A stretch of DNA of 64,000 nucleotides, taken from assembly GCA_020891255.1 (NCBI GenBank), contig BQFW01000010.1:620001-684000 (forward strand), read 5' to 3'. The DNA comes from Entomortierella parvispora E1425 (Eukaryota > Fungi > Mortierellomycota). Below the pieces are notes generated by a model that saw only the letters and a program-made list of their open reading frames with translations, was not told the DNA's origin and ran no database searches. A program made the position numbers and the translations under genes. Positions 1,457 to 15,301 of this stretch are shown here, in pieces; position 1 is the stretch's first letter; every line of letters begins with the position of its first letter.

Positions 1457-3793
1457 TCAAGTGGTCTTCTTGCCCTTGGCTTTGCTCTCTTTTGGTACAA
1501 CGACGTCAAAATCCCTCATCATGAGATTGAAGAACGTTCCAAAGAACATGGCAATAACCGTGCACGTCAGCGTGATCACATTGTAGGGCATACTAAAGTC
1601 GGGTGTCGGCAGACTGACAAGCAGTGTCTCAGTGTAGACACGGATCTTGTCCAAGCCCTCGTCTTCTGATCCTCTAGTGCTGTTGAACCGGCTTTGAACC
1701 TGGCTAGCCTCCCGCTCCTGGTATATTCTCAAATGATCGAGACCTCCGTATCCAATCTGTCCTTGTTGACGAGGCAGCTCTGCCGTGATCACAGCACATC
1801 CTACATCGAATCCTCTGTTGGCATCGGGTGGATATTCCGTGTACTTCAAAAAGACCTTGTCAAACGAGATTGAGAATTTCACTAGAGATTTGGCAGGGAG
1901 TCTTAATGCCATTTCCAGAACCGCGGGCCTGCCTCGATCCACTGCTGGCTGATAAAACATCTTGGAGACCAAATCTATCATAAGCGATAATATAAGAGTT
2001 AGAAAACACGTTCTTGATATATTCAAAAGAGAAAGGAAATCATCATTCGTACCTCTTTGGTTGTCTAACGTTTTTCCGTTCAAATCGATAGTAAATGTAT
2101 GCAGGTACAACTTCAGATACCAGGGCAAGGTATCCAGGTAGACTGACTCTACATCCTCTGAATTATTGTTGTGAATCTCAATTGATAAGCCTCCACGCTC
2201 CTGGCCATATCCTGTAAAGTACCGATGGGCAACAATGCCAGGGGTGATCGGACGCACTATATAGCGTAGAAAAATGTCAGTCCCTGTGTTAAACGCGGGC
2301 GGTCTCCGCTTATATTTGAAATCATTCAGCCTGATCATGTAAACGTACCAGATTTGGGTCTTGCATTCTCCCATTGCATTGAAAGCTCAAAAGGAGAAGA
2401 GTTTGCGCTGACGCCTGAGATATCATAGACTGCAATCTCCTGCTTGTCTTCTTCTGATCCGATAAAGTGTGTTCCCTTTGCAGGCGCAGGCGTGAGTGCG
2501 TACTGGTTCTGGTAATTGGTTGTCTGAGGCAAGTGAAGAACAATCTTGGATGTAGATGCCAGGGGGCATGCCTGAGTGATCTCCCTCTCAAACAATCCAA
2601 TAAGTGTCCAGTCGTGGCTTCCATCGTGACGAGCAACATCAAACACTGTGGTGATCGACTGCACCAACTCCAAGCTTTTTACTCGACAAAGCTCATCCTA
2701 AATGAAAAAATTACCAGAATAAAAACGTTAGGAGGCTGTGACTGGGCGAAAAATATACGTGGCAGAAAAATAATGGTGCCATCCTTCCCATGGACCATAC
2801 CTCGCAGACAGGTCGGACGTGGATTGACATTGAATAGAATCGCGAGTCGAACAGCTTGTGTGATTTCAACAGCGACGCAATTCCCGCCTTTGTTTTGCAC
2901 GGCAACAGTTTGATCCAAGGCGTCAGGTTCTCTGTGCAGACGTTCTCATGAGGCAATGATCCATAGCGCAGTCTCTTTGTATCAGCTGAGGAAGCATTGA
3001 CGTTGGAATGAACATTATATAATCCCTCGTTCCTGAAAGACAGCTTGGGCTCTGTCGTGATGGTATCGTCAATAAAGTTGAGGGAGGCGCAAAAAAGTCC
3101 AGAGAGGGTGTTGGTCAGCCCTTTCCAGTTCAAGTCCGTCCTATTGTTGTTTTGTGGGTGCAGTGATTAGGATCCTTAGAAACAAGATCAGATCAGATCC
3201 TGAGATATCCATGATACTTACTGGCCCTTGTCATCGTTCAGCCACGCCCAGAGCTCGACGCCTGTGCCCACAGATGGCGCGAGCGGATATCCCCAGTCGC
3301 CATATTGCCACCGTCCTTGCGTAAAGGTAAGATGAAGTTCCTCGACGTCAAAGCTGTGTAGGATTTGCCCAATGGACCGAGGGAACAGGTTGTAGTGTGT
3401 AACTAGCGCAGAAGGAGACAAGCCAGGAGACAAGCCAGGTCGAGATGATTAGTCACCATCTCTACTGTTTCCATGCTCAGCCACGATGATCCCATGAACA
3501 ATTCATCAGTCAACCCCAGTTTCAACGGATTCCACTTCTAGAGTTGTCTTACAGAGATTAGATGCCGCGCCATCCAGATGTTGCTCGTCCATCATGGTTC
3601 CAATGTGGGTTGTAAATTGAAAGTGGCTGTAGACGCTTCCATCGTTCAGAGGTTTGAGGACAAGTTCTTCATGGAATGCCTCGGGTGCCTTGAGGATGGG
3701 AACAGAATCCTTCGTAGCCGCCGCAGGGGCTGTGGTCAGTGCTAGCAGTGCGACCGAGAGGGTCAGCACTGTGGATACCGAGGTGTGTCGCAT
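1457..3793 (-). CDS. GPI16: GPI transamidase component Gpi16/PIG-T, multi-exon
   Basis: Signal peptide MRHTSVSTVLTLSVALLAL, then FHEELVLKPLNDGSVYSHFQF, GWQYGDWG, W..LTNTLSGLFCASLNFID, LPHENVCTENLTPWIKLLPC, and C-terminal YTETLLVSLPTPDFSMPYNVITLTCTV plus a TM helix and KKTT tail. Confidence 0.95.
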
Positions 3794-4354: not shown

Positions 4355-7300
4355 ATGGAGGAGACCCTGACGTTAAACTCTGCCACCATCACCGCTGGGG
4401 CCAAGAATAACAACACCACTGCCATCGACTACCCTGATACTTCAGCTAACGAACAGGCCTACGTCAGCTTGATACACACCTTGGATGGACTTGGGTAACA
4501 GCGCCAGACATACTAGAATTGAAGCAGCGACCGTAGCCATGATATCCACCTATCTAACTCGCTATCTCTTCCCATGACCGGCAATATAGTTTGGAGGGTC
4601 TAGCTGAAAGAAACCCAACTACCCAGTATAGCGTTGGTCAAATGTACGAAAATGGCGATAAGCTTCCGCAGAGCTTCGCCAATGCCATGCAATGGTACAT
4701 GAAGGCCGCCCGCCAAGGAAGCGCCCCGGCGCAAAACTGCGTCGGGGTTTTATATCGTGACGGAAAAGGTGTCTCGCAAAACTACACCACCGCCAGAGAG
4801 TGGTTTTTCAGAGCCGCCGACCAAGGATATGCCCCAGCTCAGTTCAACTTGGGGCTGATCTACCATCACGACAACGATCCTAAAGCTATGGAGTGGGTTA
4901 TGAAGGCCGCTAATCAAGGACACGTAACGGCTCAATTTACTATTGGCTCGATGTACTATATTGGTGACGTTGTTCCACAAGACCGGTCTAAGGCCATGGA
5001 ATGGTATCTGAGAGCATCTGACCATGGACATGCAATTGCTGAGTTCAGCATTGGCGCAATGTACGATAATGGCGAGGGTGTTGATCAAGACCATTACATG
5101 GCTGCCGAGTGGTATTTGAGAGCGGCTCACCAAGGGCACGCTGGTGCCCAGTACAACCTAGGCTATCTCTATCAACATGGAAGAGGCGTCCCGCTAAACG
5201 TCTCCAAGGCTCTAAAGTGGTACATGGCGGCAGCGAACCAAGGACTCACTCAGGCTCAACGCTATCTGGGAGTCCTGTATCACGTTGGTGACACTGTTCC
5301 ACAAGATAAACTCAAGGCTCTGGGATGGTATATGAAGGCCGCCCAGCAAGGCGACGCGAGCGCTCAGTTCGACATTGGCACGATGTACGACGACGGCGAT
5401 GGTGTTGTTCAGGATCTCTGTATGGCTGCCGAGTGGTACTCCAAGGCGGCTAAACAAGGATATGCCAGTGCTCAGTATAACTTGGGCTTTCTATTTCAAC
5501 ATGGCAAAGGCGTTCCACTGGATACCTCCACAGCACTACAGTGGTATACGAAGGCAGCTGATCAAGGGAATCCTAACGCCTTGTTTTGCCTAGGTGTCAT
5601 GTACTACCTTGGTAGAGACACCAAAAAGGATCTCACCAAAGCCCTGGAGTGCTATCTCGCAGCTGCTGATCAGGGACATGCTGCAGCTCAGAATTACGCA
5701 GGCTGTATGTACCATGATGGCCTTGGAGCACCAATAGATTATATCAAAGCTAAAGAGTGGTGGCTGAAGTCAGCTGGCCAAGGATATGCTTCTGCACAGA
5801 AAAACATTGGCAAGATGTACCAGTCAGGAGATGGTATTCCGAAGGATTATCAGAAAGCGATGCAGTGGTATTTGAAGGCATCCGATCAAGGATACGCGCC
5901 AGCTCAGTTCAATATTGGCGCGCTGTACCAGTTCCGTATTGGCGTTCCCAAAGACATCCAGAAAGCAATGGGGTGGTACCTAAAGGCTGCTAATCAAGGA
6001 TATGCGGGCGCTCAGTACAGCTTGGGCGTGCTTTACCGTGACGGCAAGGGTGTTCCCCAGGACCATCAGAAAGCAATGGAGTGGTACCTTAAGGCTGCTG
6101 ATCAAGAACATATGCGCGGCCAGTACAGCTTAGGCGTGCTATACCGTGACGGCAAGGGTGTTTCCAAGGACTATCGGAAAGCAATGGAGTGGTATCTAAA
6201 GGCCGCCGATCAAGGACTTGCGGCTGCTCAGAACAGCATAGGCGTGTTATACCATGACGGCAAGGATGTTCCCAAGGACTATCAGAAAGCAATGGAGTGG
6301 TTCCTAAAAGCCGCCGATCAAGGACATACAGCTGCTCAGAGCAGCATAGGCGTTCTATATCAAAACGGGAAGGGTGTTCCCAAGGACTATCGGAAAGCAA
6401 TGGAGTGGTACCAAAAGGCCGCCGATCAAGGACATGCCATTGCCCAGTACAACACAGGCGAATTGCACTATTACGGCAACGGTGTTTCCCAGGACTATCA
6501 GCAAGCAAAGGTGTGGTACCTAAAGGCTGCCGATCAAGGACATGCGGGCGCCCAGTACAGCATAGGCGTGCTATACCGTGACGGCAAGTATGTTCCCAAG
6601 GACTATCAGCAAGCAATGGGGTGGTACCAGAAGGCTGCTAATCAAGGATATGCGAGCGCTCAGTACAGCATGGGCGTGTTATACCGTGACGGCAAGGGTG
6701 TTCCCCAGGACTGTCAGAAAGCAATGGAGTGGTACCTAAAGGCTGCCGATCAAGGACATGCAGCTGCTCAGAACAGCATAGGCGTGTTATACCGTGACGG
6801 CAAGGGTGTTCCCCAGGACTATCAGAAAGCAATGGAGTGGTACCGAAAGGCTGCCGATCAAGGACATGCGGTTGCCCAGTACAACACAGGCGAATTGCAC
6901 TATTATGGCAATGGTGTTTCCCGGGACTATAAGCAAGCAAAGGGGTGGTACCTAAAGGCTGCCGATAAAGGACATGCGGGCGCCCAGTACAGCATGGGCG
7001 TGCTATACCGTGACGGCAAGAGTGTTCGCAAGGACTATCCGCGAGCAATGGGGTGGTACCAGAAGGCTGCTAATCAAGGATATACAGGCGCTCAGTATAG
7101 CATGGCCGTGTTATACCGTGATGGCAAGGGTGTTCCCCAGGACTATCAGAAAGCAATGGAGTGGTACCTAAAGGCTGCCGATCAAGGACATGCGGCTGCT
7201 CAAAACGAAGTAGGCGTGTTTCACCAGAACGGCAACGGTATTCCCCAGGACTATCTGAAAGCGATGGAGTGGTACGTAAAGGCTGCCAATCAAGGATATG

Positions 7301-7488
7301 CAGGCGCTCAGTACAACATCGGCGTTTTATACCGTGACGGTAAGGGTGTTCCTCAGGACCATCAGAAAGCAATGGAGTGGCACATGAAAGCTGCCGATCA
7401 AGGATACCTGCTTGCTCAAAATGAAGTAGGCGCGTTACAACAAAACGGCGAGGGTGTTCCCCAGGACTATCAGAAAGCAATGGAGTAA
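4355..7488 (+). CDS. Sel1-like repeat protein (27 repeats, last one truncated); predicted exons 4355-4494 and 4590-7488
   Basis: 965-aa ORF of 36-aa units AQYxLGxxYxxGxGVPQDYxKAMEWYxKAAxQG. The upstream ATG at 4355 joins in frame through a GT(4495)..AG(4589) phase-2 intron with a CTAAC branch site. Confidence 0.9.
4615..7488 (+). repeat. 108-bp coding tandem repeat array (Sel1 units), nearly identical at DNA level from about 6004 onward
   Basis: Recurring block ggcgtg.tataccgtgacggcaagggtgttccccaggactatcagaaagcaatggagtggtacctaaaggctgccgatcaagga at 108-bp spacing. Confidence 0.95.
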
Positions 7489-7692
7489 TGATCAAGGGGA
7501 CGCGGGTGCTCAGTGCAGCATAGGCCTGATGCACCAACATGGTTGAGGTCCTCCCCGAGATTACAAAACAGCTGCATGTAGTATAAACAGGTTGCTGACC
7601 ATGGAGACACCAATGCCCATAGAAAACTGCAGGCCATGAAGGGCTCAATTTCTCAGCTATTGACTTCTGTTGGAAAATGGACTTCGTCCTAA
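7489..7692 (+). pseudogene. Decayed out-of-frame remnant of the last two or so Sel1 repeats and the original C-terminus
   Basis: After the TAA the sequence reads DQGDAGAQCSIGLMHQHG*GPPRDYKTAA, then in a shifted frame *YKQVADHGDTNAHRKLQAMK...SS* (TAA 7690-7692), overlapped by AATAAA. Confidence 0.7.
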
Positions 7693-7724
7693 TAAATACG
7701 AGAGTTGCATTTCATGCTTTTGTG

Positions 7725-7870
7725 TAGACAACTTGAGAGCTGATGAGCTTCTTCTGGAGCAAAGTAAAGACAACCGCCAAACCTGTCCCCACCGATGACC
7801 TCGTTGATGTCTTCACAGACCAACCACCTACGAAATTACTCACATCGTCGATAAGCGTTTATTTGTTCGC
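7725..7870 (+). pseudogene. Possible Crinkler N-terminal (ubiquitin-like) domain relic
   Basis: Across frameshifts reads RADEL/FWSKV...PVPTDDLVDVFTDQPPTK/ITHIVDKR, resembling the recalled CRN-NTD consensus AdeLtLWkV...ptddLsdVF..qPpkktIHIIVqRP. No intact ORF. Confidence 0.4.
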
Positions 7871-8468
7871 CAGGAAGAAGAAGATCCCCTCGTATCGCGC
7901 CCTCGGCACAACGTTCCGGGAACCCAGTAAAACGCGGCAGCCAATTAGCAATGATCCCTCAAGAAGCTTACCGAAAATCCTCAAAAACGTGCTTTACCGA
8001 GGCTCAATTGCTACGTGGATTGAGCAGAGGGAATAAAGGGCTCAATTCCCCGTCTTCGCCCTCGTCACTCTCTCCGCCCTGTTTGCCCTTTTCGCCCTCT
8101 TCGCCCCGTCTGCGGTCAACCCAATGAGCATGTATTTTTTTTTCTGTTCGTCGGATGAGTTCAAAGAACGACAGCGCTTGGCGCGCTTTTAGGTTCAGAA
8201 TATCGCATCCAGGGCCCAATAAAACAAACATCCTTGACACGTTCGTTTTCCTTTCGTCTCGTTGACAAGGTCAAAGGGACATAACGCCCTCCTCCCTTTT
8301 GGGGCGCTTTAACAGTATCCGGCCATTAGATCCAAAAAGAACAACCTTACCCGGCACTGAATGTTTACAGCGTGAAATGACGAATACACTTGGCACGTGT
8401 GCTTTTTCAGTAGTCCATGCCAACTGCCATCCAGAGCTGCATCGATGGTTACCATCCGAATAGGAACC

Positions 8469-8475
8469 TATAAAA
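8469..8475 (+). promoter_or_regulatory. TATA box of the small secreted peptide gene
   Basis: TATAAAA about 85 nt upstream of ATG 8560, followed by a pyrimidine-rich leader. Confidence 0.55.
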
Positions 8476-8559
8476 GGAACCCTGTTTCGCAGATCCATAT
8501 TCTTTTTTTTTTATTTCAACAGCACTACTTCCCACACTACCTCCACTTTTCTCTCCAAC

Positions 8560-8923
8560 ATGAAGTTCACCGTTACCCTCGCCATGATGGCTGCCGTTGC
8601 CATCGCCCTCATTGCTGGCTCCGCCGGTACGTCCAGTAGTTCACTCTTCACTCTTTCAACAACATCCCTTCTTTCGGTGACTGCAATAGAATCGCTCTTT
8701 TGCAATCTCACAAGTCATTTGGATAGCCATTGGCCTTTGCGTGCACAATCTCTTGTAAACTAAACTACGGCAAACACATTTGTTCCTGTGGATATTAGAG
8801 GCCAGAACCCGTGCTGAGTGCACCCAGGATTGTGGAGACGCGTATTTCAAGTGCATCAAGACGTCTTCTAGCAAGACCTGCAACATCGAGAATGCTCAGT
8901 GCATCAGCGACTGCGACGGTTAA
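8560..8923 (+). CDS. Small secreted cysteine-rich peptide, 63 aa; exons 8560-8626 and 8799-8923
   Basis: GTACGT donor at 8627 and TAG acceptor at 8798. Spliced product MKFTVTLAMMAAVAIALIAGSAEARTRAECTQDCGDAYFKCIKTSSSKTCNIENAQCISDCDG* has a hydrophobic signal peptide, an AEA cleavage site and 6 Cys. Confidence 0.85.
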
Positions 8924-9036
8924 GGCCTAGCTGCATCTGACCTATATCAGCGAACAACTACGCCTTGCGTACTTTAGCGGTTTATGTTGCTTGGCAGCCT
9001 CTTTTCGTAGCCGTGAGACTCTGGTTGCCCTTTTCA

Positions 9037-9070
<34 letters not shown>

Positions 9071-10006
9071 CCAGACCGAGACCACATGTGGAATCTAAAG
9101 AGACGTCTAGATCCTCTCGGACAGTAATAGAGCGATGGCAGTGTGCTTCAGTACCATGCGACAATATCACCCATAACCGGGCGTCCAGTTTTGTCACCTG
9201 CAGGGAATGGCCGTCTTGGTAGCGCCACTACAACCTGTGCCTTGCCACCAAATCCGACATCACTCCACAGAAGAATCACTCGGTGTGCCAGTATGACAGT
9301 AACACAACGATATCACGCGACCACAACCCCGCTCCTTCCGCGGATCTCTTGTTGCGGTACCTCTGCGAAGGGTCATCAACATAACAAGAAGGAAGAAGAG
9401 TATCCTTATTGCTCCTGAACGAGAACATAGTGCAAAGTGACAGAAAATGAAATCCTCTTGCTTGATAAAAAAAGGTCCACCCGACCAACTCGATAGTGAA
9501 ACCCTCGACATGCAACACCTCCTGATATTCATCACCGGCATCATGTACTAATCTAGGAAACTCTTTGTTCTTTTCCTGTATCTCCTCTTGCTATCCATTT
9601 TTTTTTTTTTTGATGTCTGTCCCTTGAAGTAGCCTGTCATGTTGTTTGATTCTCCCGTTTGACGTTATCCCACCCTTAACTGAACCCAACCTTTCTGTAC
9701 AGTCAACCCGAAGTTTTTGGCCACAACTCTGTGTTTCTTGAGACTTTTCGAGGAACAAACTGGTAACTTTTTGGCGCAAGTATTGGCACTGGATTGTGCA
9801 GAAGAGAGATGCGCCAACAAATGCGCCAATAAGTGTGCCACAACTGACCTTTCGCAACAGAGTACTCGTGGCGACGTTGCTGTACCCTTCCACCTAGGCC
9901 CCTCCGCCATGGCATTTTATTTGAATTCTGAAATTAATAGGTATATGACAACTGAGGAGAGCCAACCCTCCATTGCAGTACAAGAAGCATCCACGCGGCC
10001 AACAGC

Positions 10007-13000
10007 TTACTGCTGTTGTTCAAAGAGCCGCTTATTCGTCTCGGTCAGCCCCTTGACGCCCTGGATATTGGCCTTTGACAACACAAGCGTATCAGGAGCG
10101 GATCGCCACTGCAGACGAAACTGAACACCTTCGGCATCCTGCACCACTTTCCACAAACGAACAGACTTGTCCCAACCGCCCACTGCGAGATACGTGTCAT
10201 CGAGAACAATCTTCCACGAGATACTGGTAACGCCGTCTTGAAACCCTCCCAGAACGAACAAACATTGACCAGTGTCTACATCCCACAGTCGCAGTGTCTT
10301 GTCGTAACCACCAGAGGCCATCCGCAGGCCGCAGGGAGAAAATGCCAGAGATGAAACATAGGCAGTGTGGCCCCTCAAAGTGGTGCTGTGGTCGCCTGTT
10401 CGCGCATCCCAGAGTCGTATAGTCCTGTCATAACTGCTAGAGGCAACATGCTGGCCACTAGGTGAAAACACGACAGACGGGACAGAGTGCGCGTGCCCGC
10501 TCAAGGTAAATCTAAGCGCGCCTGTCTGAACATCCCAGAGTCGCACAGTCCTGTCCTTGCTGCTTGAGGCGAGCTGCTCGCCGCTGGGTGAGTAGGCCAC
10601 AGAATATACAACGCCGGTGTGGCCACTCAAGATGGACGTGAGAGCACCAGTCTGCACATCCCACAATCGCACAGTCTTGTCCTTGCTTCCTGAGGCAATC
10701 TGACGACCGCAGGGAGAATACGCCACAGAAAAAATATAGCTGGTGTGGCCACTCAAGGTAGAGCTAATGGTGCCTGTCCGTACGTCCCACAATCGCACAG
10801 TGTTGTCCTGACTGCCTGAAGCGATCTGCTGGCCACTGGGTGAGTACACCACAGAAAAAACAAGACTGGTGTGGCCGCTCAAGGTGGCGGTGAGAGCTCC
10901 TGTCTGTACATCCCATAATCGCACAGTTGAGTCCTGACTTCCCGAGGCAACTTGCTGGCCGCTGGGAGAAAACGCCAAAGATGTTACATCTCTAGTATGG
11001 CCATTAAAGGTGATATCGTCGGTGTGTACATCCCATAGTCGCACAACTGTACCATAACTGCTTGAGGCGATTTGCTGGTCGTTGGGAGAATATGCCACAG
11101 AAACTATACTATCGATGTGACCGCTGAAGGTGGAAGTCAGTGTCCCAGTCTGCACATCCCACAGCTTCACAGTCTGATCAGCACTACCCGAAGCAAGCTG
11201 TCGGCCGTTGGAAGAATATGTTACAGCAGTAACATAATCACTATGGCCCCTCAGAATTGATGTGAGAGCGCCTGTCTGCGCGTCCCAGAGTCGAATGGTG
11301 TGGTCCATGCTACCTGAAGCGATCTGTAGGCCGTTTGGTGAATAAGTTACAGAAAGCACATGACTATTGTGTCCATGCAAGGTAGAGCAAAGAGAGCCGG
11401 TTTGTGCATCCCAAAGCCGCACAGTGTTGTCCTCACTTCCTGAGACAATCTGCTGACCGCTTGGAGAATACCCCACAGACCTCACGCAACTGGTGTGGCT
11501 ACTCAAAGTGGAGCAGAGAGCACCAGTCTCTGTGTCCCATAGTCGCACAGTACTGTCATCGCTGCCTGAAGCGATCTGTTGACCATTAGGAGAAATCGCC
11601 ACAGAAAGCACATCGTCGGTGTGACCGCTCAACGTAAAGATAAGAGCGCCTGTCTGCACATCCCAGAGTCGCACAGTCATGTCCTTGCTGCCTGTGACCA
11701 TCTGCTTACCGCTGTGAGAATAAGCAAAAGATGTTACAGCGTTGGAATAGCTCATCGTGATAGCTCCACGTCCGTCGGTTTCGATATCTTTGACAGTTCC
11801 AGTGTGTCCATGTAAGTAGGTCTCGCTCCAGGTGGATGTGTCATACATGGCAATTGAGCCAGATTCCAGACCAACTGCCAGCTGCTTTCCATCAGGTGAG
11901 AACCTACAACACCAGGCAATGGTCTTTTGCAAAATATATGGCCACTGCCCAAATTTGATACCCTCCATCTGCGAGTCGCTCAAATCGGCATGCCGCAACC
12001 AGACGTTTCGAAGCGTGGTGTTTCTCAAGTCTGCTCCCTGCAGCTGAGCCAAATCAAAGTCGCCATAACTCAAATCCGCACCAGGAACTCGGATTCCGCT
12101 CAGATCTGCGCCATTGAAACGCTCACTGGCTCGGATCAAAATGGTAACGGCATTGGCTGCAGCCTGGCTAACTGCGGCCTCGGCCTTGGAAAGACGCAGG
12201 ATGTTTTGAAGTTGAGTACTGAACTCTCGACTTTGGTGAACACGCTCGGCTAGAAAGTGGACGATGGAAGACTCTGAGACGATTCTGATTTGACCGAGAG
12301 GATGCTTGACAATAGGCAATGGGCTGTCGCTTGAATCAAGGCATGTTGCAAGATCCAGCTGAGATACGTTTCCTCTTGGATCGAAAATCAAGCATGAATA
12401 AAAGTACTCTAGCAGGGATCGATGACTGAATTCATACAAGTTTCTTTTGCGAGATGGGCGAACGCTGTGTCGAATTAATCGGAGAGGCTCCAGGAAGTTC
12501 TCTCTGCAGACCAGCTGAGCCGACTGGCGCAGTAACTTTGTCCGAAAATCAGGACCAAAGAATGCGTCCTTCCACGACCCGCTATCGAAGACCGCTGAGT
12601 ATGTCACGGAATTCAGGCCCTCTTGCTCTTTGAACAGGCAGTACGACAGCTGCTTCGAGAAATCCCGTCCAAGGTGCTCGATGTCGTCGTTTTCCAGCGA
12701 TAAAAATACCGAGAGAATACCATTATCCATTTTTCCATTGGAGTGTTGATTGATCAGCCGTTGTTTTTCCGACTCGAAATGCAGCTCCACGAAACGATCA
12801 TAAAGGTCAACTCGTGTCATCTTGGTTGTGGTTCCAGCAATTCTTGGGAGAACATCCAGAATCATCTTGAGCATGAAGGGGTTCTTGGCCAGCTCCATCA
12901 GATGGGTAATATTCTTGAGGCGCTCCATGTATTGTTCTGTGGTCCACTCTGCCTCCTTACCCAAGTAGTCTGAAGCCTTAGGCACTTGAGTGAATCGCTC

Positions 13001-15301
13001 GACGTATTCTCTGATCTGACTCATCCTGAAGGGGACAATTACGGCTTCCTCGTAGAGATTCGACGTATGAGAAAAATTTGGGTTGTCTATGGTTGCTGTT
13101 TCTGGTTCAAAATAGTTCCGATAATTGGGTCCGAGGTATTGAGTACGACAGCTGATAATCATCTTTGCCTGCCATTGTCGATGTTTGTTGAATTGGTTTT
13201 TGGTATGAAGGTTGGTCCATTTATGACATTCGTCGTACCCGTCGCAAACCAAAATGAATTGTCGGGAGCCTCTCATGCTTTCTATTTGTAGATCGGTGAA
13301 AAAGCCCAAGTCTTCCAGATGTTGACGAACCATATCCTTGTCCGGCGCGTCGACTGTCTTCAGATCAATAAATAATGGAATACGTCCCCCAGGTTTGTAT
13401 CCGGCCCAGAGCTCAGCTTCCAAACGCAGGCCAAACGTCGACTTGCCAGCACCAGAGTCTCCAAGGACAAGCAGAACTTCACTCTTGCTTCCAAGAAAAT
13501 TACTGGTGCGCTCCTGCAACTCGACTAGGACTTCCTCTGATGCCTGAAGATTTTGCTTCGATAGTAGTTGGATATAAACTGCCCGCCTGTCATACGCTCT
13601 GGATCGTTGCCGGAGGAGTCGATCAATGGCAAACTCGACATCAGGATCCGTGTTCACCATGTGTAATAGCGGAGAAGATATGGGTAGAGGTAGGCTACCC
13701 AACAATGGCTGTGCGAACTCGAACGGTTTGACGTTCCTGACCCTTAAACCGCAGGTTAAACTAGTTGTCCTTTCCATGATCGCCTCGTTATAAATAGCTA
13801 GTGGATCATGGAAGCCATCTGCGATAAATGAGACAGAAAGTTCTGAAATGTGTCGAAGGATTGTCAATGCCCAGCTCCTGATTACATATCCAGATTTTAC
13901 ACGCGCGCTGGTCTTGGTGTACTCTTGCAGGAGAGTAATAGCTTGGTGGCGAGCATTTATGTTGCAAGTAGGATCCACCGCAAGCTCTCCTAGAATCTGA
14001 CAGACATGCCACTGAAAGTTGGTGTTGTCACTGCTGGGTCCCTTGTAGATCAGCTTGTGAAGGTCCGTCAAGAGGCGGTGTCGTACGAAACCTTTTGCTC
14101 TTTGAACATCTTGAAACCACTGCTTTGGACTGTTGGTCCTCAAGGTCTTTCTCAGTAGCTGATCGAGATTGGTGCCTGCCGTCTGTCTGCCAGAGACTGA
14201 TACTAGCGTCTGCATTGCTAATCGAGCCTGAAACTTTACAAGAGGGTCCTTGTGCCTTTGCTGAGTTGACAAAATCCTGAATAATGGACCGAATTCTACA
14301 CGAATTTCGTCCTTTGGCAGGCAAGTCCCCAGAGCTGTAAATAAGACCGTCACTGCAGCAGTCAAATGGATGATGTCTTCTCTGTTCTTTTTTGGTGTTT
14401 CCTCCAGGCGCTTCCATATGGGTCTCAGAATGAGGGTCAAATTATCGAATGCAAGAAAGTCGGGCGGACTATCCCTAACCAACTGAACAACACCAAGAAG
14501 AATGTTGACGTCCAATGAAGTATCTCGCTGAAACTCCTGAATAAAGATTCCGACGAGATCCAGATAATGGCCTTTGTTCAACAGTGGGCTAATAAGAATG
14601 ACCTCTCGAATAGAATCCGGATCCCTGGTAGGCTCTGCTACAAACTTGTTGGCCATCTGAGTGATCACACTGTAGAGGTGTCTTTTTTCCAGCGGATTAC
14701 TTTCCATGTACTGGATCCACTCCTCTTGGCTATTACCGTATATAGACGGCAACAGTCCTGACAATGGCAACGGCAGTGGAAGCGGTGTTGGGTCGTCACA
14801 TGCCTTATCAAGGAGGCGACAGCAGTGGAAAAGTAAAACGGTATCCCCTATGGGCTCATCGTCTCCTGGCGCAGGAACAGCGATACATCTCTTCTGTTCG
14901 AGTGAGGAACCACCTGCTGCTACTGTCAACAAGTTTGGGGTTTGAAGAGACGGCAATGTCGGTGTAGATCCTGCATCCGAAAGTGATGAGGCATTTTGAC
15001 CCTGTTTTTGACTCAAGAGTGTTTGTGCGAAGGGAAGGCACCTTCCTGATGATCCAGTAGTCAAGCTAGAATCCTTTGTTGAGAGACTGCGAGCTGTTGC
15101 TACAACCGTAGAAATCTCTGAACTGACGCCGAGTGCATCTGTTGTTGGGTTGGGTGTAGTTTGACGACCTTGAACTGGAATTGATTGGACAAAGGGCTGG
15201 GGTTGCATTGGCATATCTACAGGCGTCGGTGTTGATGAGTGTGCATCATTGCTGACATGGGTGTCGCTGCCCAACTGGACGCTGGGGTGCTGTAGATCCA
15301 T
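10007..15301 (-). CDS. NACHT-WD40 NLR-like protein (helical N-terminal domain, NACHT, pentapeptide repeats, 14 WD40 repeats), single exon, 1764 aa
   Basis: Walker A GDSGAGKST at 13436-13462, Walker B FILVCDGYDE, IISCRTQYL sensor, pentapeptide stretch FNGADLSGIRVPGADLSYGDFDLAQLQGADL, and 14 GH..WD units with a 126-bp period. Confidence 0.93.
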   Translation of the reverse strand: MDLQHPSVQLGSDTHVSNDAHSSTPTPVDMPMQPQPFVQSIPVQGRQTTPNPTTDALGVSSEISTVVATARSLSTKDSSLTTGSSGRCLPFAQTLLSQKQGQNASSLSDAGSTPTLPSLQTPNLLTVAAGGSSLEQKRCIAVPAPGDDEPIGDTVLLFHCCRLLDKACDDPTPLPLPLPLSGLLPSIYGNSQEEWIQYMESNPLEKRHLYSVITQMANKFVAEPTRDPDSIREVILISPLLNKGHYLDLVGIFIQEFQRDTSLDVNILLGVVQLVRDSPPDFLAFDNLTLILRPIWKRLEETPKKNREDIIHLTAAVTVLFTALGTCLPKDEIRVEFGPLFRILSTQQRHKDPLVKFQARLAMQTLVSVSGRQTAGTNLDQLLRKTLRTNSPKQWFQDVQRAKGFVRHRLLTDLHKLIYKGPSSDNTNFQWHVCQILGELAVDPTCNINARHQAITLLQEYTKTSARVKSGYVIRSWALTILRHISELSVSFIADGFHDPLAIYNEAIMERTTSLTCGLRVRNVKPFEFAQPLLGSLPLPISSPLLHMVNTDPDVEFAIDRLLRQRSRAYDRRAVYIQLLSKQNLQASEEVLVELQERTSNFLGSKSEVLLVLGDSGAGKSTFGLRLEAELWAGYKPGGRIPLFIDLKTVDAPDKDMVRQHLEDLGFFTDLQIESMRGSRQFILVCDGYDECHKWTNLHTKNQFNKHRQWQAKMIISCRTQYLGPNYRNYFEPETATIDNPNFSHTSNLYEEAVIVPFRMSQIREYVERFTQVPKASDYLGKEAEWTTEQYMERLKNITHLMELAKNPFMLKMILDVLPRIAGTTTKMTRVDLYDRFVELHFESEKQRLINQHSNGKMDNGILSVFLSLENDDIEHLGRDFSKQLSYCLFKEQEGLNSVTYSAVFDSGSWKDAFFGPDFRTKLLRQSAQLVCRENFLEPLRLIRHSVRPSRKRNLYEFSHRSLLEYFYSCLIFDPRGNVSQLDLATCLDSSDSPLPIVKHPLGQIRIVSESSIVHFLAERVHQSREFSTQLQNILRLSKAEAAVSQAAANAVTILIRASERFNGADLSGIRVPGADLSYGDFDLAQLQGADLRNTTLRNVWLRHADLSDSQMEGIKFGQWPYILQKTIAWCCRFSPDGKQLAVGLESGSIAMYDTSTWSETYLHGHTGTVKDIETDGRGAITMSYSNAVTSFAYSHSGKQMVTGSKDMTVRLWDVQTGALIFTLSGHTDDVLSVAISPNGQQIASGSDDSTVRLWDTETGALCSTLSSHTSCVRSVGYSPSGQQIVSGSEDNTVRLWDAQTGSLCSTLHGHNSHVLSVTYSPNGLQIASGSMDHTIRLWDAQTGALTSILRGHSDYVTAVTYSSNGRQLASGSADQTVKLWDVQTGTLTSTFSGHIDSIVSVAYSPNDQQIASSSYGTVVRLWDVHTDDITFNGHTRDVTSLAFSPSGQQVASGSQDSTVRLWDVQTGALTATLSGHTSLVFSVVYSPSGQQIASGSQDNTVRLWDVRTGTISSTLSGHTSYIFSVAYSPCGRQIASGSKDKTVRLWDVQTGALTSILSGHTGVVYSVAYSPSGEQLASSSKDRTVRLWDVQTGALRFTLSGHAHSVPSVVFSPSGQHVASSSYDRTIRLWDARTGDHSTTLRGHTAYVSSLAFSPCGLRMASGGYDKTLRLWDVDTGQCLFVLGGFQDGVTSISWKIVLDDTYLAVGGWDKSVRLWKVVQDAEGVQFRLQWRSAPDTLVLSKANIQGVKGLTETNKRLFEQQQ

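Follow-up and report, generated by a model that had tools for sequence, protein, structure and literature searches.

A predicted two-exon gene for a secreted six-cysteine peptide in Entomortierella parvispora and its resemblance to disulfide-stapled helical hairpins

Disulfide-stapled helical hairpins serve as plant defence peptides, trypsin inhibitors and animal toxins (PMC11591084, PMC11722136, PMC11896702). The known CS-alpha/alpha hairpins include scorpion kappa-KTx, conotoxin vil14a, nemertean B-IV, acrorhagin I of sea anemones and the plant alpha-hairpinins (PMC11722136), and octocoral toxins, which have three or four bridges, are likewise disulfide-stapled helical hairpins (PMC11896702). 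The plant six-cysteine (6C) alpha-hairpinins, exemplified by nigellin-1.1 (2NB2) and CC-AMP1 and numbering more than 1000 predicted members, have the motif C-X3-C-X3-C-X4-20-C-X3-C-X3-C (PMC11591084). The phytotoxic PcF/SCR effectors, reported from oomycetes only, contain six cysteines in three disulfides (PMC7327169). A limited search of the literature found no disulfide-stapled helical hairpin from a fungus. To our knowledge, no fungal cystine-stapled helical hairpin is known, and the peptide considered here, which is encoded in a 64-kb stretch of the genome of the soil fungus Entomortierella parvispora (contig 10, positions 620001-684000; the window analysed throughout), would be the first.

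Reading and translation of positions 8560-8923 on the plus strand of the window reveal a two-exon open reading frame for a 62-residue pre-peptide, present in the sequence as the first-pass annotation had claimed, with the phase, the GTACGT donor, the TAG acceptor and the open frames all confirmed. Exon 1 (8560-8626, plus strand) consists of an ATG in the context CAAC-ATG-A, with A at -3, followed by 22 signal-peptide codons and the first base (8626) of a codon split in phase 1; its translation has the shape of a signal peptide, with Lys at position 2, an unbroken, uncharged hydrophobic core of 18 residues and then G-S-A. The predicted intron (8627-8798, plus strand; 172 nt) has, besides its donor and acceptor, a branch-like CTAAA 35 nt from its 3' end, and its removal would join G to AG to form a Glu codon across the junction. 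The cysteine-rich frame is open only from 8759, and the first AG beyond that point, at 8797-8798, matches the required phase 1. Exon 2 (8799-8923, plus strand), delimited by translation, encodes the mature peptide region and ends at a TAA stop codon (8921-8923). The TATA box that had been attributed to the gene is present as a consensus match, TATAAAAG (8469-8476, plus strand), found by reading and by script 91 nt 5' of the ATG and followed by a pyrimidine-rich leader; it would presumably act as a promoter element. The six-cysteine core (8819-8914, plus strand) has the spacing C-X3-C-X6-C-X8-C-X6-C-X3-C, with cysteines at residues 7, 11 and 18 and at 27, 34 and 38 of the exon-2 peptide, so that C7-X3-C11 and C34-X3-C38 form outer CX3C pairs. 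A regular-expression search confirmed that the mirror symmetry reported previously is exact, and the pattern has no second occurrence in any of the six frames of the 64-kb window. The splicing and secretion of this product are what we infer from an anatomy and a coding signature that are read directly from the data.

The spliced model was examined exon by exon: fold prediction and searches used the exon-2 peptide, and Pfam was also searched with exon 1. Five AlphaFold2 models were made from the single exon-2 sequence, the best of which (pLDDT 90.6) has helices at residues 4-21 and 24-38, while the other four have pLDDT of about 50. The residue numbers of the presumed cysteine pairs each sum to 45, placing the centre of symmetry at 22.5, which is the predicted turn between the antiparallel helices in the Ser-rich X8 loop. 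On a helical wheel, the three cysteines of each helix (i, i+4, i+11) span no more than 40 degrees, compared with 80 degrees for i, i+4, i+8. This geometry is as expected for, and supports, nested disulfides 1-6, 2-5 and 3-4, the pairing being deduced from the mirror positions. The helix-loop-helix proposed in the first-pass annotation thus agrees with the prediction, which is confident in one of the five models and has the cysteines mirrored about the turn. Foldseek placed acrorhagin I (6UX5) as the best PDB match, with a TMq of 0.75 and an rmsd of 1.3 Å over 41 columns but an E-value of 4.4; the VIA comparison of 6UX5 with the model gave Z 4.9 and 26% identity over 39 residues. A structure search of all PDB representatives yielded only generic, unrelated helical hairpins with Z of 5-5.9. 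Because acrorhagin I does not surpass generic hairpins in Z score, the match names a fold class rather than a relative.

Comparison with the described systems shows likenesses of architecture and differences of detail. The 6C alpha-hairpinins resemble the window peptide in their signal peptide, short length, two antiparallel helices (predicted here) with three cysteines each, mirror spacing and outer CX3C pairs; they differ in that the inner cysteine is X3 from the CX3C pair, whereas in the window peptide it is X6, so that the inner rung lies seven residues along instead of four. The 6C alpha-hairpinins are plant peptides and typically basic, whereas the window peptide is fungal, acidic and without detectable sequence similarity to them. 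Thus, of the earlier description of the peptide as alpha-hairpinin-like with an extra cysteine pair, the resemblance holds, but a plant 6C class was already known (PMC11591084), the spacing differs and there is no sequence homology. The four-cysteine alpha-hairpinins (EcAMP1, MBP-1 and the trypsin inhibitors VhTI and BWI-2c) also have a CX3C-Xn-CX3C helix-loop-helix with nested disulfides (PMC11591084, PMC11722136); they differ in having two disulfides rather than three and in deriving from plant vicilin-type or modular precursors, and the origin of many of them from multi-module precursors recalls the three tandem modules of P0003, a metagenomic protein described below. Acrorhagin I and the acrorhagin-like toxins are similarly secreted, have three or four disulfides over two helices and are not membranolytic (6UX5; PMC11896702), but they are animal venom components of 36-50 residues with up to 8 cysteines and one bridge to the loop, and no sequence match to them was found. 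The kappa-KTx peptides, the cone-snail CS-alpha/alpha peptides and nemertean B-IV likewise employ a cystine-stabilised helix-loop-helix as an extracellular ligand, but all are animal venoms with different spacings, with two disulfides in kappa-KTx and vil14a and four in B-IV (PMC11722136). The PcF/SCR effectors (PF09461) and the olive pollen protein Ole e 6 share with the window peptide a small size, six cysteines and, as predicted for the latter, secretion and three disulfides. Both PcF and Ole e 6 fold as a helix-loop-helix, and Ole e 6 has a symmetric C3C3C...C3C3C arrangement. PcF/SCR proteins differ from the window peptide in cysteine spacing, and the latter has no match to PF09461. Judging from the predicted fold, the window peptide would most likely represent a new cysteine framework, and a new kingdom, for a known scaffold.

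The searches yielded a single candidate relative. The exon-2 peptide matched no Pfam family at E-values up to 10 (PF09461, Tim10/DDP and CHCH included), and exon 1 had no Pfam match. Searches of PDB sequences with the exon-2 peptide and with profile A1 (from the alignment A1 described below) returned no credible match, and none to 2NB2 or 2L2R; a match to NF-YB (E 1.2) was noise. A word-index protein search with the same two queries found nothing, and the ESM Atlas contained no look-alike of the exon-2 peptide or of P0003. In the E. parvispora genome itself (38.9 Mb, 20 contigs), the peptide and profile A1 found the locus alone and no paralogue, a match on contig 14 (E 0.5) being rejected as off-frame within an apparent mitochondrial kinase gene; the 2.4-kb region around the peptide gene is single-copy. 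The exon-2 peptide is absent from a collection of 15 billion proteins, which indicates that the gene is apparently uncalled in any assembly represented there, and neither the unspliced 67-residue ORF nor the 47-residue ORF has an exact entry in the same collection. Searches of bacterial and archaeal genome contigs and of viral contigs were likewise negative. An exhaustive phmmer search of 1.84 billion representative proteins with the exon-2 peptide returned two proteins, P0001 and P0002/P0003. The former, a bacterial protein of repeated ricin-B-type units, was judged spurious, as no cysteine is aligned and its significance is the sum of four repeats; the PDB sequence match to the designed protein ThreeFoil (3pg0) is the same repeat artefact, again with no cysteine aligned, and in both matches a single repeat contributes only about 11-13 bits. 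The region concerned, window positions 8828-8902 (peptide residues 10-34), resembles a ricin-B/beta-trefoil repeat unit, a likeness also considered spurious.

P0002/P0003 is a 172-residue JGI metagenome protein with a signal-peptide-like start followed by three near-identical tandem units of 52 residues, each consisting of a Pro/Thr-rich linker and a module with the same C-X3-C-X6-C-X8-C-X6-C-X3-C spacing. Its gene (L003:295-813, plus strand; also found in L002 and L004) lies on a eukaryotic metagenome contig of 2.2 kb, the rest of which contains short minus-strand ORFs matching neither Pfam nor the E. parvispora genome. Comparison of the contig flanks and DNA with the E. parvispora genome revealed no counterpart and no synteny, which indicates that the host of P0003 is not a close relative of E. 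parvispora. The modules of P0003 and the window peptide align without gaps (alignment A1), with invariant columns of C, Q, D, A and S; the common residues other than cysteine are one Gln, the dipeptide Asp-Ala with an aromatic residue after it, and one Ser. The E-value of 8e-4 among 1.84 billion proteins is inflated by the summing of three near-identical repeats, and the BLAST score of P0003 comes nearly entirely from the cysteines themselves. With the cysteines held in register, the score of the remaining residues is +6 to +10, compared with a shuffle mean of -18 to -29 (p = 0.001-0.008). The palindromic framework makes a further control possible, in which a mirror-reversed query keeps all of its cysteines aligned; this reversed query scores -18 to -22, compared with +8 to +9 for the forward query, and the similarity is therefore direction-specific, beyond what composition or framework would produce. 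AlphaFold2 predicts a helix-turn-helix in all three modules of P0003 (pLDDT 60-75), in which a Pro of the X8 loop marks the break. As a query, P0003 found only itself.

The linkers of P0003 contain no dibasic sites and have a mucin-like look, which suggests from sequence that P0003 may display its modules for binding and is less likely to be a precursor from which toxins are processed. Common descent of P0003 and the window peptide seems about as probable as convergence on the same scaffold. It is possible, though we hold it only tentatively, that the two represent an undescribed eukaryotic family of secreted hairpins with a three-rung disulfide ladder, stand-alone in a Mortierellomycete and in a mucin-linked tandem array elsewhere, and possibly acting as inhibitors or toxins in soil microbial or animal interactions. 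The new peptide family proposed in the first-pass annotation would have one candidate member beyond the window peptide, namely P0003.

The composition of the locus fits a real gene. GC content drops from 61% in exon 1 and 53% in exon 2 to 42% in the intron, and the flanks have 44-45%. Codon log-odds, calculated with 12 long ORFs of the window as the reference, reach +0.44 bits per codon in exon 1 and +0.15 in exon 2, compared with -0.01 for read-through into the intron in the frame of exon 1, and the proposed frame is the only one of the three forward frames with a positive score. Exon 2 ranks near the 41st percentile among real coding windows of 40 codons from this DNA and within the highest 8% of random ones; read antisense, exon 2 scores much as in the forward frame, which is a known weakness of the codon log-odds test. 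The predicted intron was compared with those of the conserved Gpi16 gene (GPI transamidase subunit; window 2340-3560, minus strand; Pfam match), in which four introns of about 80-140 nt, with junctions assigned by eye, have the donors GTAAGA, GTAAGT, GTATGG and GTACGT and CTAAT or CTAAC branch sites. An intron of 172 nt with a non-consensus CTAAA is longer than these and slightly atypical, yet plausible. Enrichment of splice hexamers over the window was uninformative. We consider it probable that this is a real gene with the predicted splice.

The foremost alternative is that there is no gene, and that a hydrophobic ORF with an ATG, a GT...AG pair and an off-frame cysteine-rich ORF have become aligned by accident in a spacer of 2.5 kb. 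Cysteine clusters by themselves are indeed common here: six-frame translation of the window contains 31 stop-free clusters of at least six cysteines within 34 residues, compared with about 3 in shuffled sequence, most of them off-frame readings of real genes. Given six cysteines, mirror symmetry has P = 0.0038, from which it follows that symmetric clusters must arise by chance somewhere in a 39-Mb genome; a lone symmetric six-cysteine cluster is unremarkable genome-wide. The equal score of the reverse-complement frame of exon 2, the lack of a homologue in any related genome or of a paralogue, and the absence of the peptide from protein collections are all compatible with accident, and a rough base rate for a signal peptide, a donor and an in-phase cysteine-rich ORF is about 1 per genome when symmetry is set aside. 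When mirror symmetry (P ~0.004) is included, however, the genome-wide expectation falls to about 0.01. A simple rule of hydropathy and charge applied to ATGs identifies four signal-peptide-like starts in the window, and only the one at 8560 is followed by a GTRNGT donor 18-35 codons on; the combination of signal peptide, donor and in-phase symmetric cysteine frame is far beyond chance. The GC contrast, the frame-specific codon bias, the TATA box and the A at -3 are independent of that estimate. The confident AlphaFold2 model, whose turn coincides with the symmetry centre, and the presence of the same framework, with direction-specific similarity, in P0003, an unrelated secreted protein, also speak against accident. 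An accidental alignment is for these reasons unlikely.

It is more improbable still that the locus is transcribed but yields a different product, either the unspliced 67-residue ORF (8560-8763) or the result of other splicing, with the cysteine frame left untranslated. The unspliced frame is open for 67 codons, encoding the signal peptide and a Ser/Thr-rich tail, and both the non-consensus branch site and the relative length of the intron could be taken to favour it; but the read-through part lacks a coding signal (-0.01 bits per codon, 42% GC), a canonical donor hexamer falls precisely where the signal peptide ends, the cysteine-rich frame is regained at the first usable AG, and the 67-residue ORF is in no collection.

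True membership of the alpha-hairpinins, the PcF/SCR proteins or the acrorhagin-like peptides, whether by descent or by horizontal transfer, is very improbable. The outer CX3C...CX3C pairs and the predicted helix-loop-helix, together with the existence of six-cysteine alpha-hairpinins (PMC11591084), the first place of acrorhagin I in Foldseek and the six cysteines and three disulfides of PcF (PMC7327169), would agree with such an assignment, but no Pfam match at E up to 10 and no PDB sequence match with peptide or profile accompany them, the spacing is X6 rather than the X3 of the 6C motif, PcF is reported to be specific to oomycetes (PMC7327169) and the structural Z score does not exceed that of generic hairpins.

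The small Tim proteins are characterised by CX3C pairs whose nested disulfides bridge a helix-loop-helix. The CX3C pairs and predicted helix-loop-helix of the window peptide recall them, yet an intracellular twin-cysteine hairpin of the mitochondrial intermembrane space (twin-CX3C small Tims or twin-CX9C CHCH proteins) is the least probable of these readings, given the N-terminal ER-type signal peptide (by the hydropathy rule), the lack of a Tim10/DDP or CHCH match in Pfam, and the signal-peptide-led P0003 with its extracellular-type Pro/Thr-rich linkers.

We return to the reading that we consider likely, on the predicted fold and by analogy with characterised peptides: a genuine, single-copy, uncalled gene whose product would be a secreted helical hairpin with three disulfides, acting as a binding or inhibitory ligand. 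The signal peptide of exon 1 would direct the product to the ER, with probable cleavage after G-S-A or A-E-A at the exon junction. What is left, 38-40 residues, would fold as an antiparallel alpha-helical hairpin, in which the three same-face cysteines of each helix (i, i+4, i+11) would pair 1-6, 2-5 and 3-4 to form a three-rung disulfide ladder. Such a secreted mini-protein, about 4.3 kDa in mass, would be slightly acidic and very stable. By analogy with every characterised stapled hairpin, it would most likely work extracellularly, binding or inhibiting a protein of another organism, such as a protease or a channel. In the trypsin inhibitors among the alpha-hairpinins, the inhibitory site lies in the loop between the helices, and the Lys-flanked, Ser-rich loop of the window peptide would be the corresponding candidate contact or inhibitory site. 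Both the disulfide pairing and this function are features that we infer, starting from a fold that is itself predicted.

The first-pass annotation also nominated the peptide as an antimicrobial or effector. The exon-2 peptide has 5 basic and 6 acidic residues, giving a net charge of -1 and a pI of about 4.9, and the modules of P0003 are slightly acidic too. A net charge of -1 argues against the classic cationic, membrane-active mode of antimicrobial action, so a cationic membrane-lytic peptide appears unlikely from the sequence and the antimicrobial nomination is disfavoured. An effector role, and any link to the adjacent NLR-like gene, are unsupported.

The genes around the peptide gene are eukaryotic and intron-containing. 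Immediately upstream, a long single ORF (4591-7488, plus strand) encodes little other than Sel1 repeats (26 matched stretches, E 1e-254). On the other side and convergent to the peptide gene, an ORF of 1764 residues (10007-15301, minus strand) encodes an ARM-like N-terminus, a NACHT domain and at least 13 WD40 repeats. The NACHT domain scores 25.1 bits, just under the Pfam cut-off of 26.7, so the NLR neighbour named by the earlier annotation is recognisable as NLR-like from a sub-threshold NACHT together with WD40 repeats; adjacency is silent on function. Between the peptide gene and its NLR-like neighbour, a 66-bp stretch (9698-9763) recurs twice elsewhere in the genome, once each on contigs 12 and 13 (L007 and L008), with 79-83% identity, and is neither a tRNA nor an Rfam family. 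A run of about 29 A (9040-9068) lies about 120 nt 3' of the peptide stop codon; its weak Rfam match to RUF21 (27.5 bits, with a cut-off of 60) most probably reflects low complexity. Rfam and tRNA scans of positions 7500-10100 yielded nothing relevant.

If the gene is expressed, it would extend to early-diverging fungi a disulfide-stapled helical hairpin scaffold so far known from plants, scorpions, cone snails, nemerteans and cnidarians, and would add to it the new and geometrically tidy cysteine framework i, i+4, i+11. Apart from this, the peptide counts as an orphan, like many other small secreted cysteine-rich proteins of fungal genomes. The locus also illustrates that gene callers miss small secreted peptides with an intron directly after the signal peptide. 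Hyperstable scaffolds of 4 kDa are of interest to peptide engineers. Activity of the peptide against microbes, proteases or grazers, if there is any, would be relevant to the ecology of Mortierella.
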